Shown: positions 38,193 through 61,662, numbered from the stretch's first letter. The stretch is DNA of 64,000 bases from Entomortierella parvispora E1425 (GCA_020891255.1 BQFW01000014.1:372001-436000), one strand, 5' to 3'. The notes: generated from the letters alone by a model not told the origin. Numbers and translations are program-made.

Positions 38193-43270
<5,078 letters not shown>

Positions 43271-55746: not shown

Positions 55747-58700
55747 ATGGTGGCCTCGTCCGGACCGGCAACAACCAGCGGGAATGGCATTGCCAGCACA
55801 GGAACATCCGCTTCCGACATTGGCTCGGCCATGAATGGGGCGGCTCGAAAGCAATCTCATCTCAGCATCGACTCGAATGGCGCCAACTCGACCTTTCTAC
55901 ATACCCTCAACTCACAGCTCCAGATTGCGGCCAACAGCCAGCATCAAAATCGTCAGCATGGCATTCTCATGGACCAGGAAGACATGCCAATGTCTGAGAA
56001 TGACTTTCCTTTGTCCATCGGTGTTGACAGGGCAGCACTCATCGCAGCCGACTTCAACACTGATGAGTTTCTGTCTGCACGTCGCCATCTTCCTTTGGAG
56101 GAACTCAAGTCGCAGGTAACTTGAACATGCGTGGCGCATAGTAGTATCTTGACGCACTGTCGTGGACTGACGTGGACAATGAACCCCTTGACTGACTGCA
56201 TGCCCATCTCGTACTTTTCTAGCTTATTGCACATATGAAAGAGCTGAAGACGGAACTTGTAGAGCTTATCAACAGCGACTATGCCGACTTTATCAACCTC
56301 TCAACGAACCTCAACGGAGTAGACCGAATGATGGAAGATCTTCGAAAGCCATTGGACAAGATGAAAGGCGACGCAATCGTACGTCTGTGGGCTCTGCACC
56401 ATTTAAATGTAGATCAGGACGGAGTGTTGTAACTGACTTGTTTCATTTTCTTTTCGTGATATCGTAGGCTGTGAAAACAAACCTGGAATCGGTTGTGGGA
56501 AGTCTGGAACAAAAACTGGAGCATCGAGCCGAGATTAGGGAAAAGAAGGCCAGCCTTCAGTTACTCCTCAATATCAATGAGTCTGTGTCCAAAGTCGAAG
56601 GACTCTTGCAACTTTCTAAAGGATCAGATTCGTCAGCCTCTGGGTTGCAAGAAGGTCAAGAAAGGTAAATGAACTGACCCCACAAATTGAAATGAATGCA
56701 AGGATCACTCCCACACATTCTCACTTATGATCTGGACAAACTTTACCTTGAATAGTATCAGTGTTGCCAAGCGATTAGAGCGCGTGGCGATTGAATACAA
56801 TCAAATGCAATACCTTGTCAGCAAAGGCGCTGGCCTGCCTTTCGTTGCCGAGATTGACTGGGTAAGTGGCGTAAAATTGAAGTTTTTTTTTTTGATATTT
56901 TATTATGGTGCTCATTACTGACGCTTCAATTATCTCCAGAGGTTGGTCCGGATCAAGGAAGTAATGAGCGATAATCTGGCGACTGTACTCCGTAACTGCA
57001 TTGGAAGTGCTGCCGCGAATGCGGACGCGGACACATCTGATAAAGAGTCTTTGACCCAATGCTTGAGGACCTACGCCTTGATTGACCAAACCAGCGAGGC
57101 GGAAAAGGTCATTACAGAGGACCTTCTTGCACCCTTTATGAGCAAGGTACATATTTCAATGGTTTAGTACAAGGACTTCTCAGAGTGGGTCAATTTCTAA
57201 ACATTTCTCCTTGTGCGATGCTGTAGACAATCACTCGGCAGGCACTCTCCGATCAGACGCAAGGGCACGATGGCGCCATCTCACCTAGACCTTTGGTTGT
57301 GATGTACAACAAAATCATTGCGTTTATTAATACCCGCTGCAGTACCCTGCTCCATGTGACGCAGAAGGACTTGAAAGGCACCAACTTTGATATCCCAGTC
57401 AACTGCATCTGGGGTGTCACCACTCAAACCATCTTGAGAGTGATGCCTCAGATCCTATCAGCCGGCGACACGGATATTTTTCACCGCAACTACACAGACA
57501 CAATGGAGTTTGTATCTCAGCTTGAAGCATTCTGTGGATCCATCCGATCATTAACGAGGTTAAGATCCTCTCCCGGATATCAAGATTTCATGAAACGGTG
57601 GCAACTCCCTGCATACTTTTCTCTGCGGTTCATGAAGATTTTGAAATCGATCGAAGAGGCCTTCCAGATGAATCCTGAGGTCTTTCAAAAACCTATCGGT
57701 GTTGATGGTATGTATTTTTGCGCATGGTTGACTTACACAAATGTATGGTCTTGGAGTTACTAAAGGTGTTGTTCTTTTTTCTCAAATTCCTCTCGTAGTT
57801 CACCTGCCTGCCAGCATAGCCGTCATTAAGGCGATCGAGAAGTGCTGGTCACCAGACGTCTTTATTTACGGATTGGCCCACAGTTTCTGGAAATTCACTC
57901 TCCAGCTCTTGACGCGCTATTCGTCTTGGATCACCACCAATCTTGCCAGCGATCTTGATCATTCAAAGGATCGAGCCATTCAGGCAAGTACTAACTCGTT
58001 GGCTTGATTCACAGGCTTTGAAATGATCATAATATACTAATTCTTTGATATTACAACAATAGTCACGGTCTGCATCGCCAGCACCAGGATCTATCGGAGG
58101 CAACGGCCGTTCAACACCACAGCCGGGTGCGTCTCTTCGGTCAGCCGAGCCTGTCGGAAAGAACTCGATAGAGAAGATGGAGCTCCAGCAATTGTCCATG
58201 ATTGTCAACGATACGGACTTTGTCTGTGCACGAGTCCAGGAGATTTTTGAAACGCAGATCCAGTCAAAACTCCCTATTTCCATGGCTGAGGAGCCAGTCG
58301 TGCTGGAGTCTTTTGAACAGGCGCTCAAAACTATCCGTCAGGATGTTCCAGCAGTTCAACAGAGTATCAAGGATCTCATCACACGTCGCTGCGTGAATAC
58401 CCTGAACATCAGCATCAAGAACATCAGCGCCCGCTACGAGTCGCCCCGTGAGGCGTCTCATTTCGTGCCGCTGATCCTAGAACCTCTCTCGGAGTATATT
58501 GCAGGCCCAGGTGCTGTTCTCACAAGTGCTTCCCGTGAGGCATGGTCAGTTGAAGTGATCAGTGCTACGACAAAACAGTATAGCTCTATGTTGGAAGGAC
58601 GATTGCGGGCAGCCGCCAGGGAGGAAGCTAATTCAGGCAAGTTCAAGGCCGCCGCAAAGACAAAGGCTGGCGGGTTCCTTAGTCTGCCAAACGCGTTCAC

Positions 58701-58959
58701 GAATACGGGACTTTCAGACCCAGACAAGATCCGACTTCAGTGCGCCTTGGATGTCCATCGCTACAAGATTGAGGTAAGCACCGCACTCCATGTGATCTTG
58801 GCCGTTTTCTTGATATGGAAGCTGACAACGTTAACATTGCTCTTTTCGAAATAGCTGACAAAGTTCCAAGTCCTGCCGGATACGTTTGAGCCTTTCATGG
58901 AGCTGCAATCCCACACTCAGCCTTTTGAAAATCTACTGGCAACTGTACAGCAGGAGTAG
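55747..58959 (+). CDS. COG2: Conserved oligomeric Golgi complex subunit 2 (multi-exon; probably one GC-AG intron)
   Basis: DFNTDEFLSARRHLPLEELKSQ-L...LKTELVELINSDYADFINLSTNLNG, RLERVAIEYNQMQY, CLRTYALID, FHRNY, FMKRWQLPAYFSLRF, CWSPDVFI...FWKFTLQLLTRY, DPDKIRLQ. Confidence 0.92.
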
Positions 58960-59055
58960 ACATGCAACGCGTTACAATAAAAAAAAATCGCCCTACTATA
59001 CAATCATCGTTCATAATGGAAGCGATGGTTTTATTTGTACCACGGATGTAGAGTA

Positions 59056-60490
59056 TCACCAGTTTTTCTTTCGTCGATGCATTGAAATGTCGGTTTCTGG
59101 GATGTTAACTATACTCAGAACTTGAGTACTCGTGCCCATCAGCATGGATCGCTGTTCCGAGTTGAGCGTGGACCAGACTTGCTGTAGGTAGCCCTCTGCA
59201 TCCATAGATATTATCTCTCGGTCTGTGCTGTGGCCTTTGTTTCTAGAATTTCCTTCTGTCTCTCTGTCAACGTTACTATCAGAGATGGTACTGTTACTAT
59301 GGGATCTTGTCTGCGATTGCTCTTTCGCCGCGAAATGGAGATCGGCGTCTTCCTCAGAGTCTGTGCAAAAGAATTCTTCATCCAGTTGTATGTTTCGTGT
59401 CGCAGGAGGTGGCCTATGGATCGTCTCTCGTCAGCTTGAGGCAGGCATTCATAAAAGAGAAAGGTTGCCCAAACGAGAGAGTTGTTTTACCTTTTGATTC
59501 GCAAGATGGTCTCTGGAAGTCGTCTTTTCTTTGGGCCATGCTGTGGTGGCAGGGAATCTGATATATGGATCGGGCTCTGGTCGCTAACTGGTGGATGATT
59601 CTGAGTGCGCTTTTGACTAAAAGATGGCCCCATGGTGCGCCAGTACTGCGTTGTTGGAGTACCATCGTCACTTTCTGAACTGACATCACCTTGTATGAAC
59701 GTATCCAGCTCCTTGACTGCAACATCGATCGTACCACTGTGTGTTCTTGTTGTTTCGATAGAAATGTCGCGAATCGCGCGCTGTTGTCGCTGAGATGTCG
59801 CTGTAGGGGATATAGTCGCTGTAGGGAGTGTAGTCGCTGTAGGGGACTGCGAGGGTGTGCCATGATTCCCGATCTTGAGACTGTCGCCGTTGCTACCGCG
59901 TGCTTCGTTGCTGTTGGTCAGACTCAAGTACTGGAAGTCTGGTGAGGGTTGATATAATGCGACCGGTGATGGCGAAAATGACAACATGTTCTTGTTCATG
60001 AACGCTTCCATTCCACTTTGCAGGCTCTTGATCGCAGCACTACCGTGGTCGTCATCCACATCTCCACTGCTACAGTGATAGGGGCTGGCTTGCCAGCTCT
60101 CCAAGGCGGGAAAAGTTCTCTTGTATCGATTTAAAGAAACCACCGTCTTGCCTGTTATTGAATCGACGATCCATTCGGGTCGTAGGATTTTCATCATGGG
60201 TCTGCAAGTTTGTCCATTCTGTTTGGTTCTATCGCTAACAAACGCAATCTCGGCTTCCTCAATATCTTTAACGAGACCTCCATGAGTGACTATCAATAGC
60301 AGAGATGGTTAGCAGATACTCTTTCAAACATCGAGACGCTGGGAGATTAGATGCCTGCCAAGCCGATGAACGAAAAGGTATTTTTACTCCAACTGGTAAC
60401 GTATGACTGAAGCCCCGGAGCGAACCAGGCCGTTAAGCCATGAAATATTGTCGGCGAGGCTATGTGATGGGTCGGCGATGAAGAACTCAT
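59056..60490 (-). CDS. BRCT-like domain protein, candidate TERB2 homolog; join(60388..60490,59491..60289,59056..59413), 419 aa
   Basis: Introns GTAAAA(60387)..GATAG(60290) with branch CTAAC and GTAAAA(59490)..CATAG(59414) with branch CTGAC; the phases sum to 1260 nt. N-terminal IFHGLTAWFAPGLQSYVTSWITHGGLVKDIEEAEIAFVSD...ILRPEWIVDSI...VSLNRY is BRCT-like. The gene model is well supported; TERB2 orthology is an inference. Confidence 0.75.
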
Positions 60491-60717
60491 GCTGGCGAAT
60501 GGAAGAGGATGAAGTGATGAAAGAAAGGAAAGGAATGCTGACATGCACGCTTGGCATGTCCCTTTTTTTTCAGTGGCCACAAAAAAAATTAAATTCCCGA
60601 AAATTGGTGGCAAACAGACAGGGACAGCAAGTTTGACAAGGCGGGAATCTAATGCATTGTAAAGGTCTGTCTGCCTATGGTATGATGCTGTCTATAGTGA
60701 ATCTACGAATACCTTGC

Positions 60718-61662
60718 TTACGCCTCCCCATCCAACTTCATCTCCTTGTTTGCAATGTGGGCCAAGCGAACAAACTTTGTATGGCGTCCCAAAGCAACCA
60801 CCTTGTCACCGACCAAGATCTCAACAGTGGTGTAAGCCAAGGAGCCACCAACTCGATCGCATCTCGAGTTCTAACGACAATTCCAAAAGAAGAAGAAGGA
60901 GTAAGTAAGCAAGTAAGAACAGTCCCATTCGTTGCTGATCCTCCTCAAGGCGCCGAGAATCCACAAAACTGAAGCTTCTCTTACAATGGAAAGAGTATCT
61001 CCAAGCTTTGCACCAGACACAAAGGAGACGTTCAAATCTAAAGGGCGATGATGATTAGACAACCAAGTTAATAATGAATGTTCCAACAAACGGCTCCCAT
61101 CTCGAGTGGAAAACGGCGAGTGGCGCTGTATTACCAGTCGAAACTCCGGTGGCATGCATATCTTTCGAGGCGATGGCCAATGATCCTCCAACATCGACAA
61201 TTGTGCTGAGAAGTCCACCATGGCATCCTCCGAGACGGTTCTAATCAAAGGGATAACAACATCATCTTAGCTTAAACCATCGGAGTGAATCACTGTCTTT
61301 CACATATACACAATCATCCGATCAACTTCACTACTCATACCAAGTGCTGCTTAGAAACCTCGAGTTCAGCGAGGCAAGATCCCTTTGAGGCCGAGACCAG
61401 CTTGAGCTATCATAGATTGAGACCAAAGATCTCCATAGTTAGTTGCATCCCTAGATTTTGCACATCAGTCAGACTAAACCTTCAAAGATGTTTACCCCGG
61501 AAAGTGCATGCGCATCGTATCCGCCCTGATTCAAGAAGTTGGTCCTAGCAAAGACAAAAAAAAAATCGAGGTTAGAATCTTGCTACTCTGGCTTTAGTTT
61601 TTTTTTTTTTTTTTGGGCTTTGACTAGTACCAGACCCTCTTGACGTGGTTCAAAGTAGCCAT
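60718..61662 (-). CDS. ACOT13: Acyl-CoA thioesterase 13 (THEM2, PaaI hot-dog fold), 6 small exons, about 148 aa; missed by the ORF track
   Basis: Spliced product MATLNHVKRVW-TNFLNQGGYDAHALSG-LKLVSASKGSCLAELEVSKQHL-NRLGGCHGGLLSTIVDVGGSLAIASKDMHATGVST-DLNVSFVSGAKLGDTLSI-NSRCDRVGGSLAYTTVEILVGDKVVALGRHTKFV. The NxxGxxHGG, VD, GVSTD and GRHTKF motifs are present. Confidence 0.92.

Follow-up and report, generated by a model that had tools for sequence, protein, structure and literature searches.

A TERB2-like N-terminal segment in a BRCT-type protein family of the Mortierellaceae

The gene considered here lies on the minus strand at 59056..60490 of a 64,000-nt stretch of the Entomortierella parvispora E1425 genome (GCA_020891255.1, BQFW01000014.1:372001-436000; hereafter the window). 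Judging from sequence comparisons, the first ~45 residues of its product are probably homologous to the N-terminal domain of TERB2. TERB2 (Pfam PF15101) is the adaptor that links telomeres to the nuclear envelope in animal meiosis and has to date been described in animals alone; structures of the human protein exist with TERB1 (6J07) and with MAJIN (6J08). A sequence-only reading of the window had proposed that this is a fungal TERB2 gene, with three exons and 419 codons. The gene model was confirmed. Translation begins at an ATG at 60490 and ends with a stop codon at 59058-59056, and the 1260-nt coding sequence yields 419 residues identical to the database protein 'hypothetical protein EMPS_10118 [Entomortierella parvispora]' (P0001), named 'BRCT domain-containing protein' in UniRef. 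Exon 1 (60388..60490) encodes residues 1–34 and the first base of codon 35, its last full codon being a conserved Trp34; exon 2 (59491..60289) encodes residues 35–301, and exon 3 (59056..59413) residues 301–419 plus the stop. Intron 1 (60290..60387; 98 nt, phase 1) and intron 2 (59414..59490; 77 nt, phase 2) run from GT to AG, and each contains a CTAAC/CTGAC-like branch site.

The TERB2-like segment (60216..60448, minus strand; residues 15–59) is split by intron 1 and carries the patterns F.G...WF, W...GG and AxIAFVSD. It had been aligned, in the sequence-only reading, with a human TERB2 N terminus. The quoted segment proved exact for residues 4–41 of PDB chain 6j07_A, and the alignment stands, with identity at 12/41 positions and one gap. 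Its BLOSUM62 local score of 57 lies above every shuffle (24.3 ± 3.9; 0/2000 reach 57). When EMPS_10118 was compared to all 24,736 Pfam families, TERB2 was the top match, whether the query was the entire protein (E 0.025) or residues 1–130 (E 0.0094), with residues 16–59 aligned onto positions 1–45 only of the 207-position profile. N-terminal segments of 11 family members were analyzed similarly. TERB2 was matched by 10/11 (best E 0.0016), and no Pfam family other than TERB2 and BRCT_2 recurred among them. Exons taken singly matched nothing in Pfam, because intron 1 splits the N-terminal domain.

We then compared profiles with hhalign. TERB2 sequences were fetched by a search seeded with the verified 41-residue human segment aligned to the fungal N terminus. 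As the profile of that search is biased, it served only to fetch sequences, and its scores are not counted as evidence; a follow-up search with the TERB2 profile gave mammals only among the best 120 of 435. The fungal family alignment is shallow (effective number of sequences, Neff, ~2). Across alignments, the fungal family matched mammalian TERB2 with Prob 88–95%. The best run, which included marsupials, gave Prob 95%, E 2.5e-8 and a score of 48.8 over 55 columns, at 29% identity. For a null, we shuffled the TERB2 columns 300 times and obtained scores of 11.4 ± 2.4 (maximum 20.6), with 13.4 for the reversed profile. The real score is thus ~15 standard deviations above shuffled columns, and the E value multiplied by the number of Pfam families is still ~6e-4, so the homology signal is considered real. 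As a BRCT control, we used 78 LigA BRCT domains from enterobacteria, a similarly shallow set. These gave Prob 0.1% against both the fungal family and TERB2.

When the domain was split, the N-terminal half alone returned Prob 95% (E ~4e-8) and the second half alone ~1%. By hhalign, TERB2 residues 44–116 have no significant counterpart in the fungal domain, and two weak alignments compete over these residues, one pairing DWIED with DYIED and the other ILRPEW with ILPPAC. A hidden Markov model (HMM) of the fungal N-half scored 10–26 bits on full-length TERB2, with a best E of 3.6e-5 at PDB database size. This model misses 6j07, because the crystallised human chain lacks Met-Phe-Gln, and similarly truncated primate-type sequences score only 8–10 bits. 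A Met-Phe-x-Gly start is seen in TERB2 and in most of the fungal orthologs; EMPS_10118 differs, having a 14-residue extension.

Gene structure was also compared. Exon 1 ends TGG A|GT, so that intron 1, of phase 1, interrupts the codon next to that of Trp34. Five fungal genes (the window gene, L002, L084, L085 and L087) carry a phase-1 intron behind this conserved Trp, and its position and phase are the same in Dissophora, Podila, Lobosporangium and a metagenomic relative, i.e. in all Mortierellaceae orthologs examined. Mammalian TERB2 reads TGG G|GT...AG|TC (or |TG) at the corresponding place, where a phase-1 intron splits the codon following that of Trp21, which aligns with fungal Trp34. We saw this intron in two mammalian loci (L001 and L086; a Logan contig and the Neotoma genome). 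The remaining introns are not shared; these are intron 2 of TERB2, which lies in Arg49, and two more in the ancestral fungal gene. We regard the shared intron as an independent line of evidence for kinship with TERB2, one that is supportive but not decisive.

Several database proteins labelled 'TERB2' (P0127-P0133; L001:1501-1923; from Heterocephalus, Logan and ENA contigs) are prediction artefacts. These read through intron 1, and sometimes intron 2, so exposing the intron phase. In L087, Val is encoded directly behind the conserved Trp (W|VAHGG), as it is in TERB2 (W|VAEGG).

The TERB2-like segment forms the first part of a domain of probable BRCT fold (60078..60448, minus strand; residues 15–105), the second half of which, KILRPEWIVDSI...SLNRYKR, reads as a canonical, Rev1-type BRCT Trp helix. 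Pfam BRCT_2 (PF16589) aligns residues 37–90, from the GG motif onward, to profile positions 29–85. EMPS_10118 scores 14 bits on this model, below its gathering threshold of 27.3 bits, and 7/11 family N-terminal segments match it (best E 0.0011). The sequence-only interpretation is supported in part: TERB2 is the top Pfam family and reaches 88–95% by hhalign, but its Pfam match is sub-threshold and BRCT_2 does about equally well. Among PDB sequences, the KILRPEWIVDSI-containing half aligns with the Trp helix of REV1 (E 0.08) and more weakly with Lig4 and XRCC1 BRCT; a phmmer search of the PDB with the whole protein returned only noise.

An AlphaFold2 (AF2) model of the domain (residues 10–112) shows the BRCT order of strands and helices, with Trp74 in a helix, at a mean predicted local distance difference test (pLDDT) score of 62. 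Nearly all of its top 50 Foldseek matches are BRCT domains (RAP1/TERF2IP, REV1, ECT2, XRCC1/Lig3, Pescadillo, MCPH1, Crb2, TopBP1 and Rad4), none of them significant (E ≥ 0.12; template modelling score ~0.36–0.39). A structural search had been suggested as a check, and TERB2 is not among these 50 matches. The full-length model has a pLDDT of 52, and Foldseek with it is meaningless. With E 0.12, the N-terminal BRCT of RAP1/TERF2IP from human (7OZ0), likewise a telomere protein, ranks first in Foldseek. We considered a specific relation to the RAP1 BRCT and set it aside, as this E value is no better than for other BRCTs.

The link between strands 3 and 4 is ~13 residues, by our reading too short for the usual BRCT helix 2. 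As the N-terminal half is TERB2-like and the C-terminal half canonical BRCT, the fungal domain behaves as an intermediate, and this suggests that a BRCT was remodelled into the TERB2 N-terminal domain. Taken alone, the second half gives a further lead: 60168-60206 of the window (residues 63–75, KILRPEWIVDSI) pairs best with TERB2 residues 86–98, FILPPACLQKEI, at Prob ~1%. Da Cruz et al. noted a [F/Y]xLxP TRFH-binding-like motif in TERB2 (PMC7227075), for which the only candidate counterpart is fungal KILRP versus TERB2 FILPP, also at Prob ~1%. If the FILPPACLQKEI pairing is real, this motif would be a relic of BRCT strand 4 and the Trp helix, and TERB2 residues 44–85, including the TERB1-contact Tyr56, would be an insertion.

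A second TERB2 resemblance had been claimed for 59688..59765 (minus strand; residues 210–235), likened to the segment of TERB2 that binds MAJIN. Both strings exist, ISIETTRTHSG-(7 aa)-ELDTFIQG in EMPS_10118 and ISIDAMKKFLGELHDFIPG in real TERB2. Only ELDTFIQG and ELHDFIPG align, with a score of 22 versus 20.3 ± 3.2 for shuffles (p = 0.31), which is chance level. The MAJIN-binding motif in human TERB2 comprises residues 168–207, with Phe192. When the fungal linker or C terminus was compared with TERB2 150–221, hhalign returned Prob 0.1–0.2%. Residues 210–235 lie in the least conserved linker; the segment is kept only in the metagenomic congener L087, and the other orthologs have only a loose acidic stretch there. 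Of the conservation expected within the Mortierellaceae, that of the N-terminal domain was found, as a conserved block, and that of the ELxxFIxG segment was not seen beyond the genus. These data give no evidence for a MAJIN-binding motif in the EMPS_10118 sequence, and this claim is not supported.

An exhaustive phmmer search against 1.84 billion representatives found 17 relatives of EMPS_10118. Those that we looked up all belong to the Mortierellaceae (Dissophora, Entomortierella, Mortierella, Linnemannia, Podila and Lobosporangium). Exon 2, used as query in a word-indexed homolog search, returned only EMPS_10118 itself, and a profile scan of metagenomes found one close relative, L087. This is a congeneric ortholog (L087:116-1504) on the soil-metagenome contig Ga0302182_10021364, with the same two-intron structure as the window gene, intron 2 included; P0002 is a C-terminal fragment of its product. 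Relative to L087, the ratio of nonsynonymous to synonymous substitution rates (dN/dS) is 0.21 over exon 2 and 0.16 in the N-terminal domain. EMPS_10118 is a functional protein-coding gene under purifying selection.

In several annotated orthologs the gene is mis-spliced (L084:3001-3530, L085:2685-3380, L002:6001-6520). The Podila P0011 and Mortierella P0005 models omit a small exon encoding KPTMKILRPDWI, and the Lobosporangium models P0015 and P0019 begin downstream of the N-terminal domain. With tblastn, all four N-terminal exons were found in the DNA of the mis-annotated orthologs, and hence the N-terminal domain is universal in the family.

The ortholog alignment contains four conserved blocks (residues 15–105, 117–167, 288–322 and 363–419, P0001 numbering), separated by stretches that are variable and disordered by prediction. 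Overall, the ~310 residues after the N-terminal domain are predicted to be largely disordered. The second block (59892..60044, minus strand; residues 117–167) has a helix predicted by AF2 at 117–134, followed by a motif of the L.QPE..IQDLSVT type. The third (59350..59531, minus strand; residues 288–322) spans intron 2 and combines a basic stretch, KKRRLPET..R.KR.PPA, with an acidic Ser cluster, FF..SDSEED; its KKRRLPE portion resembles a nuclear-localisation signal. The last (59059..59229, minus strand; residues 363–419) comprises a helix at 373–392, predicted by AF2 at a pLDDT near 90, an L.I(I/V)DI.S.DI motif and a basic tail. The C-terminal half of the protein matched no family in Pfam or the PDB.

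Two neighbors serve as synteny anchors. The gene for conserved oligomeric Golgi subunit 2 (COG2; 55848..58959, plus strand) lies tail to tail with the EMPS_10118 gene and was identified by tblastx to L002, where Pfam COG2_N and COG2_C are matched. Upstream is a 4HBT thioesterase gene (60718..61549, minus strand), separated from the EMPS_10118 gene by ~230 bp, which leaves room for a promoter. Dissophora, Podila and Lobosporangium have their genes arranged as 4HBT thioesterase, Translin, EMPS_10118 ortholog, tubulin, COG2. In the window, 4HBT and COG2 directly flank the EMPS_10118 gene, and neither Translin nor tubulin gave a tblastx match at the expected place (window 58959-60718 versus L002:4619-10254). 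The locus has been rearranged locally in E. parvispora, or the genes were lost. Elsewhere in the window, 41039-43173 resembles the large gene with which the Dissophora locus begins on the left (L002:1-1441 and beyond), with up to 94% similarity at the amino-acid level by tblastx. It lies ~17 kb from its expected syntenic position.

With moderate confidence, we favor the view that EMPS_10118 is a lineage-restricted nuclear adaptor of BRCT fold, with a head kin to the TERB2 N-terminal domain and linear elements that bind further partners. The N-terminal domain, of ~90 residues, would adopt a BRCT fold, the first ~45 residues supplying strand 1, helix 1 and strands 2 and 3. The second half would keep the canonical BRCT Trp helix, which in TERB2 would be lost or remodelled. 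The protein would most likely act as a bridge in the nucleus, its BRCT-like head binding one partner and its conserved linear motifs and C-terminal element binding others. Here, the nuclear location is suggested by the KKRRLPE stretch and the bridging function by the architecture. Any link of EMPS_10118 to telomeres, the nuclear envelope or meiosis is putative.

A number of points weigh against kinship with TERB2. All family-level scores fall below the curated thresholds; on the TERB2 model, EMPS_10118 scores 15–17 bits (E 0.006–0.025), compared to a gathering threshold of 27 bits. The signal is confined to TERB2 residues 1–43 (~40 columns) of a 116-residue N-terminal domain. The TERB2 profile used for hhalign was built from mammals only, marsupials included (Neff ~1.7), and the BRCT comparator was bacterial only, such that TERB2-specific kinship is not fully separated from kinship at the level of the BRCT superfamily (Rev1, Rap1). 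The domain model is weak at its pLDDT of 62, and TERB2 6j07 is not in its Foldseek top 50. We estimate the probability that one exact intron coincidence arises by chance at ~3–4%, based on 2 × 3 intron pairs over ~165 nucleotide positions, and perhaps at up to 10% if the sequence preference of splice sites is taken into account. Finally, the phmmer search of 1.84 billion representatives yielded no relative outside the Mortierellaceae, either in other fungi or in holozoans. As EMPS_10118 does not qualify as a TERB2 by the membership tests, it should be called a 'TERB2-N-terminal-like BRCT protein' and not 'fungal TERB2'.

How far, then, does the resemblance go? If EMPS_10118 were a full functional TERB2 ortholog, it would bridge a telomere-bound partner (TERB1-like or Rap1/Taz1-like) and a MAJIN-like partner of the inner nuclear membrane in zygospore meiosis. 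The N-terminal homology and the common intron position and phase are in line with this, as is the layout of the protein, in which a domain at the extreme N terminus is followed by a disordered linker and, towards the C terminus, by a short conserved element with a basic tail. Moreover, hhalign with the family consensus extends to PDWIED versus TERB2 LDYIED, a stretch that holds TERB1-contact residues; the residues of TERB2 described as contacting TERB1 are Asp55, Tyr56, Glu58 and Asp59 (PMC6361898). However, TERB2 residues 44–116, most of the TERB1-binding surface, lack a significant counterpart, the linker and C terminus are unlike the MAJIN-binding motif (with residues 210–235 at chance level), and the family was not detected by phmmer in other fungi or holozoans. 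In addition, da Cruz et al. trace the TERB1-TERB2-MAJIN complex back to the ancestor shared by all animals (the origin of Metazoa) and report no similarity between yeast and mouse bouquet adaptors, those of fission yeast included (PMC7227075). We thus consider the full functional ortholog unlikely, while TERB2 orthology with a role at meiotic telomeres is, from the sequence comparisons, plausible. Only tentatively do we entertain the broader proposal that the Mortierellaceae retain a true TERB2 ortholog, that the adaptor predates the animal-fungal split, and that the N-terminal domain of TERB2 arose by remodelling of a BRCT, the fungal protein being the intermediate between the two families.

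Conversely, EMPS_10118 might be an ordinary, fast-evolving single-BRCT adaptor of the Rev1/Rap1 type (BRCT_2), acting in DNA damage, replication or chromatin, its likeness to TERB2 reflecting superfamily-level kinship and coincident aromatics. BRCT_2 fits the family about as well as TERB2 does (best E 0.0011 versus 0.0016), the whole-domain profile finds its best PDB sequence matches in the BRCTs of REV1, Lig4 and XRCC1, and Foldseek returns the BRCTs of RAP1, REV1, ECT2, XRCC1/Lig3, Pescadillo, MCPH1 and Crb2, not TERB2. An acidic Ser cluster and a nuclear-localisation-like stretch are, in our view, typical of DNA-damage adaptors. Yet BRCT_2 covers only residues 37–90, and the N-half, which matches TERB2 at 95%, matches no BRCT model and, when run as a profile against the entire PDB, finds no BRCT chain at E ≤ 10. 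TERB2 itself matches no BRCT Pfam model and no BRCT chain in the PDB; therefore, generic BRCT likeness does not explain the match between the fungal family and TERB2. The LigA control, at 0.1% against both families, and the intron position and phase common with TERB2 also argue against this explanation, which we judge rather improbable. A chance resemblance, or a statistical accident in a spurious, mis-called open reading frame, is effectively refuted. Every curated threshold was missed, and the comparison had been picked by the sequence-only reading, which amounts to an implicit database search; but the reading frame is conserved, syntenic and under purifying selection, TERB2 ranks top among the 24,736 Pfam families and recurs in 10/11 members, and the hhalign score is ~15 standard deviations above shuffles, with E ~6e-4 after correction for the Pfam families.

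A TERB2-like head domain in a fungal family has no precedent in the library searched. We found no paper there that combines TERB2 and BRCT, and descriptions of the TERB2 N-terminal domain speak only of a three-stranded sheet and six helices (PMC6361898). In the literature on TERB2, MAJIN and fungi, no title or abstract suggested a fungal homolog, and no top-ranked paper on opisthokonts, choanoflagellates, Mortierella, Mucoromycota or Holozoa contained TERB2. If the head is homologous to the TERB2 N-terminal domain, it would be the first candidate for a pre-metazoan root of the TERB1-TERB2-MAJIN system, testable in transformable Mortierella, and would suggest a BRCT domain as the source of the orphan TERB2 fold. 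If EMPS_10118 is a true TERB2 ortholog, the TERB2-type meiotic adaptor would be older than the animal-fungal divergence and would not date from the origin of Metazoa. If it is merely a lineage-specific BRCT adaptor, it is still an uncharacterised, conserved nuclear protein of a fungal family of industrial and ecological importance.

Among known systems, Bqt1/Bqt2 of S. pombe and Ndj1 of S. cerevisiae resemble EMPS_10118 only in a hypothetical role, that of a small meiotic adaptor between telomere proteins and proteins that have a SUN domain or lie in the inner membrane. To single BRCTs of the BRCT_2 family, the resemblance lies in the latter part of the fungal domain, where KILRPEWIVDSI...L..Y can be aligned to the REV1 Trp helix (2EBW, 5VX7), and by fold the AF2 model retrieves BRCT domains almost exclusively, including that of RAP1/TERF2IP (7OZ0). 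However, these matches are all sub-threshold (E 0.001–0.1; Foldseek E ≥ 0.12) and leave the N-half unmatched, and EMPS_10118 carries no polymerase or Myb module, nor any other that is catalytic or DNA-binding. With respect to TERB2, the fungal protein has double the length and additional conserved blocks, retains the Trp helix of canonical BRCTs, shows no detectable MAJIN-binding motif, leaves TERB2 residues 44–116 unmatched, and scores 15–17 bits versus the 27-bit Pfam cut-off. It nevertheless shares with TERB2 a domain at the very N terminus, with the Met-Phe-x-Gly start of most fungal orthologs; the F.G...WF / W...GG / AD.xF..D pattern over TERB2 residues 1–43, at 29% identity and 95% by hhalign; a phase-1 intron directly after the corresponding Trp; and a disordered linker that leads to a conserved short element and a basic tail at the C terminus.

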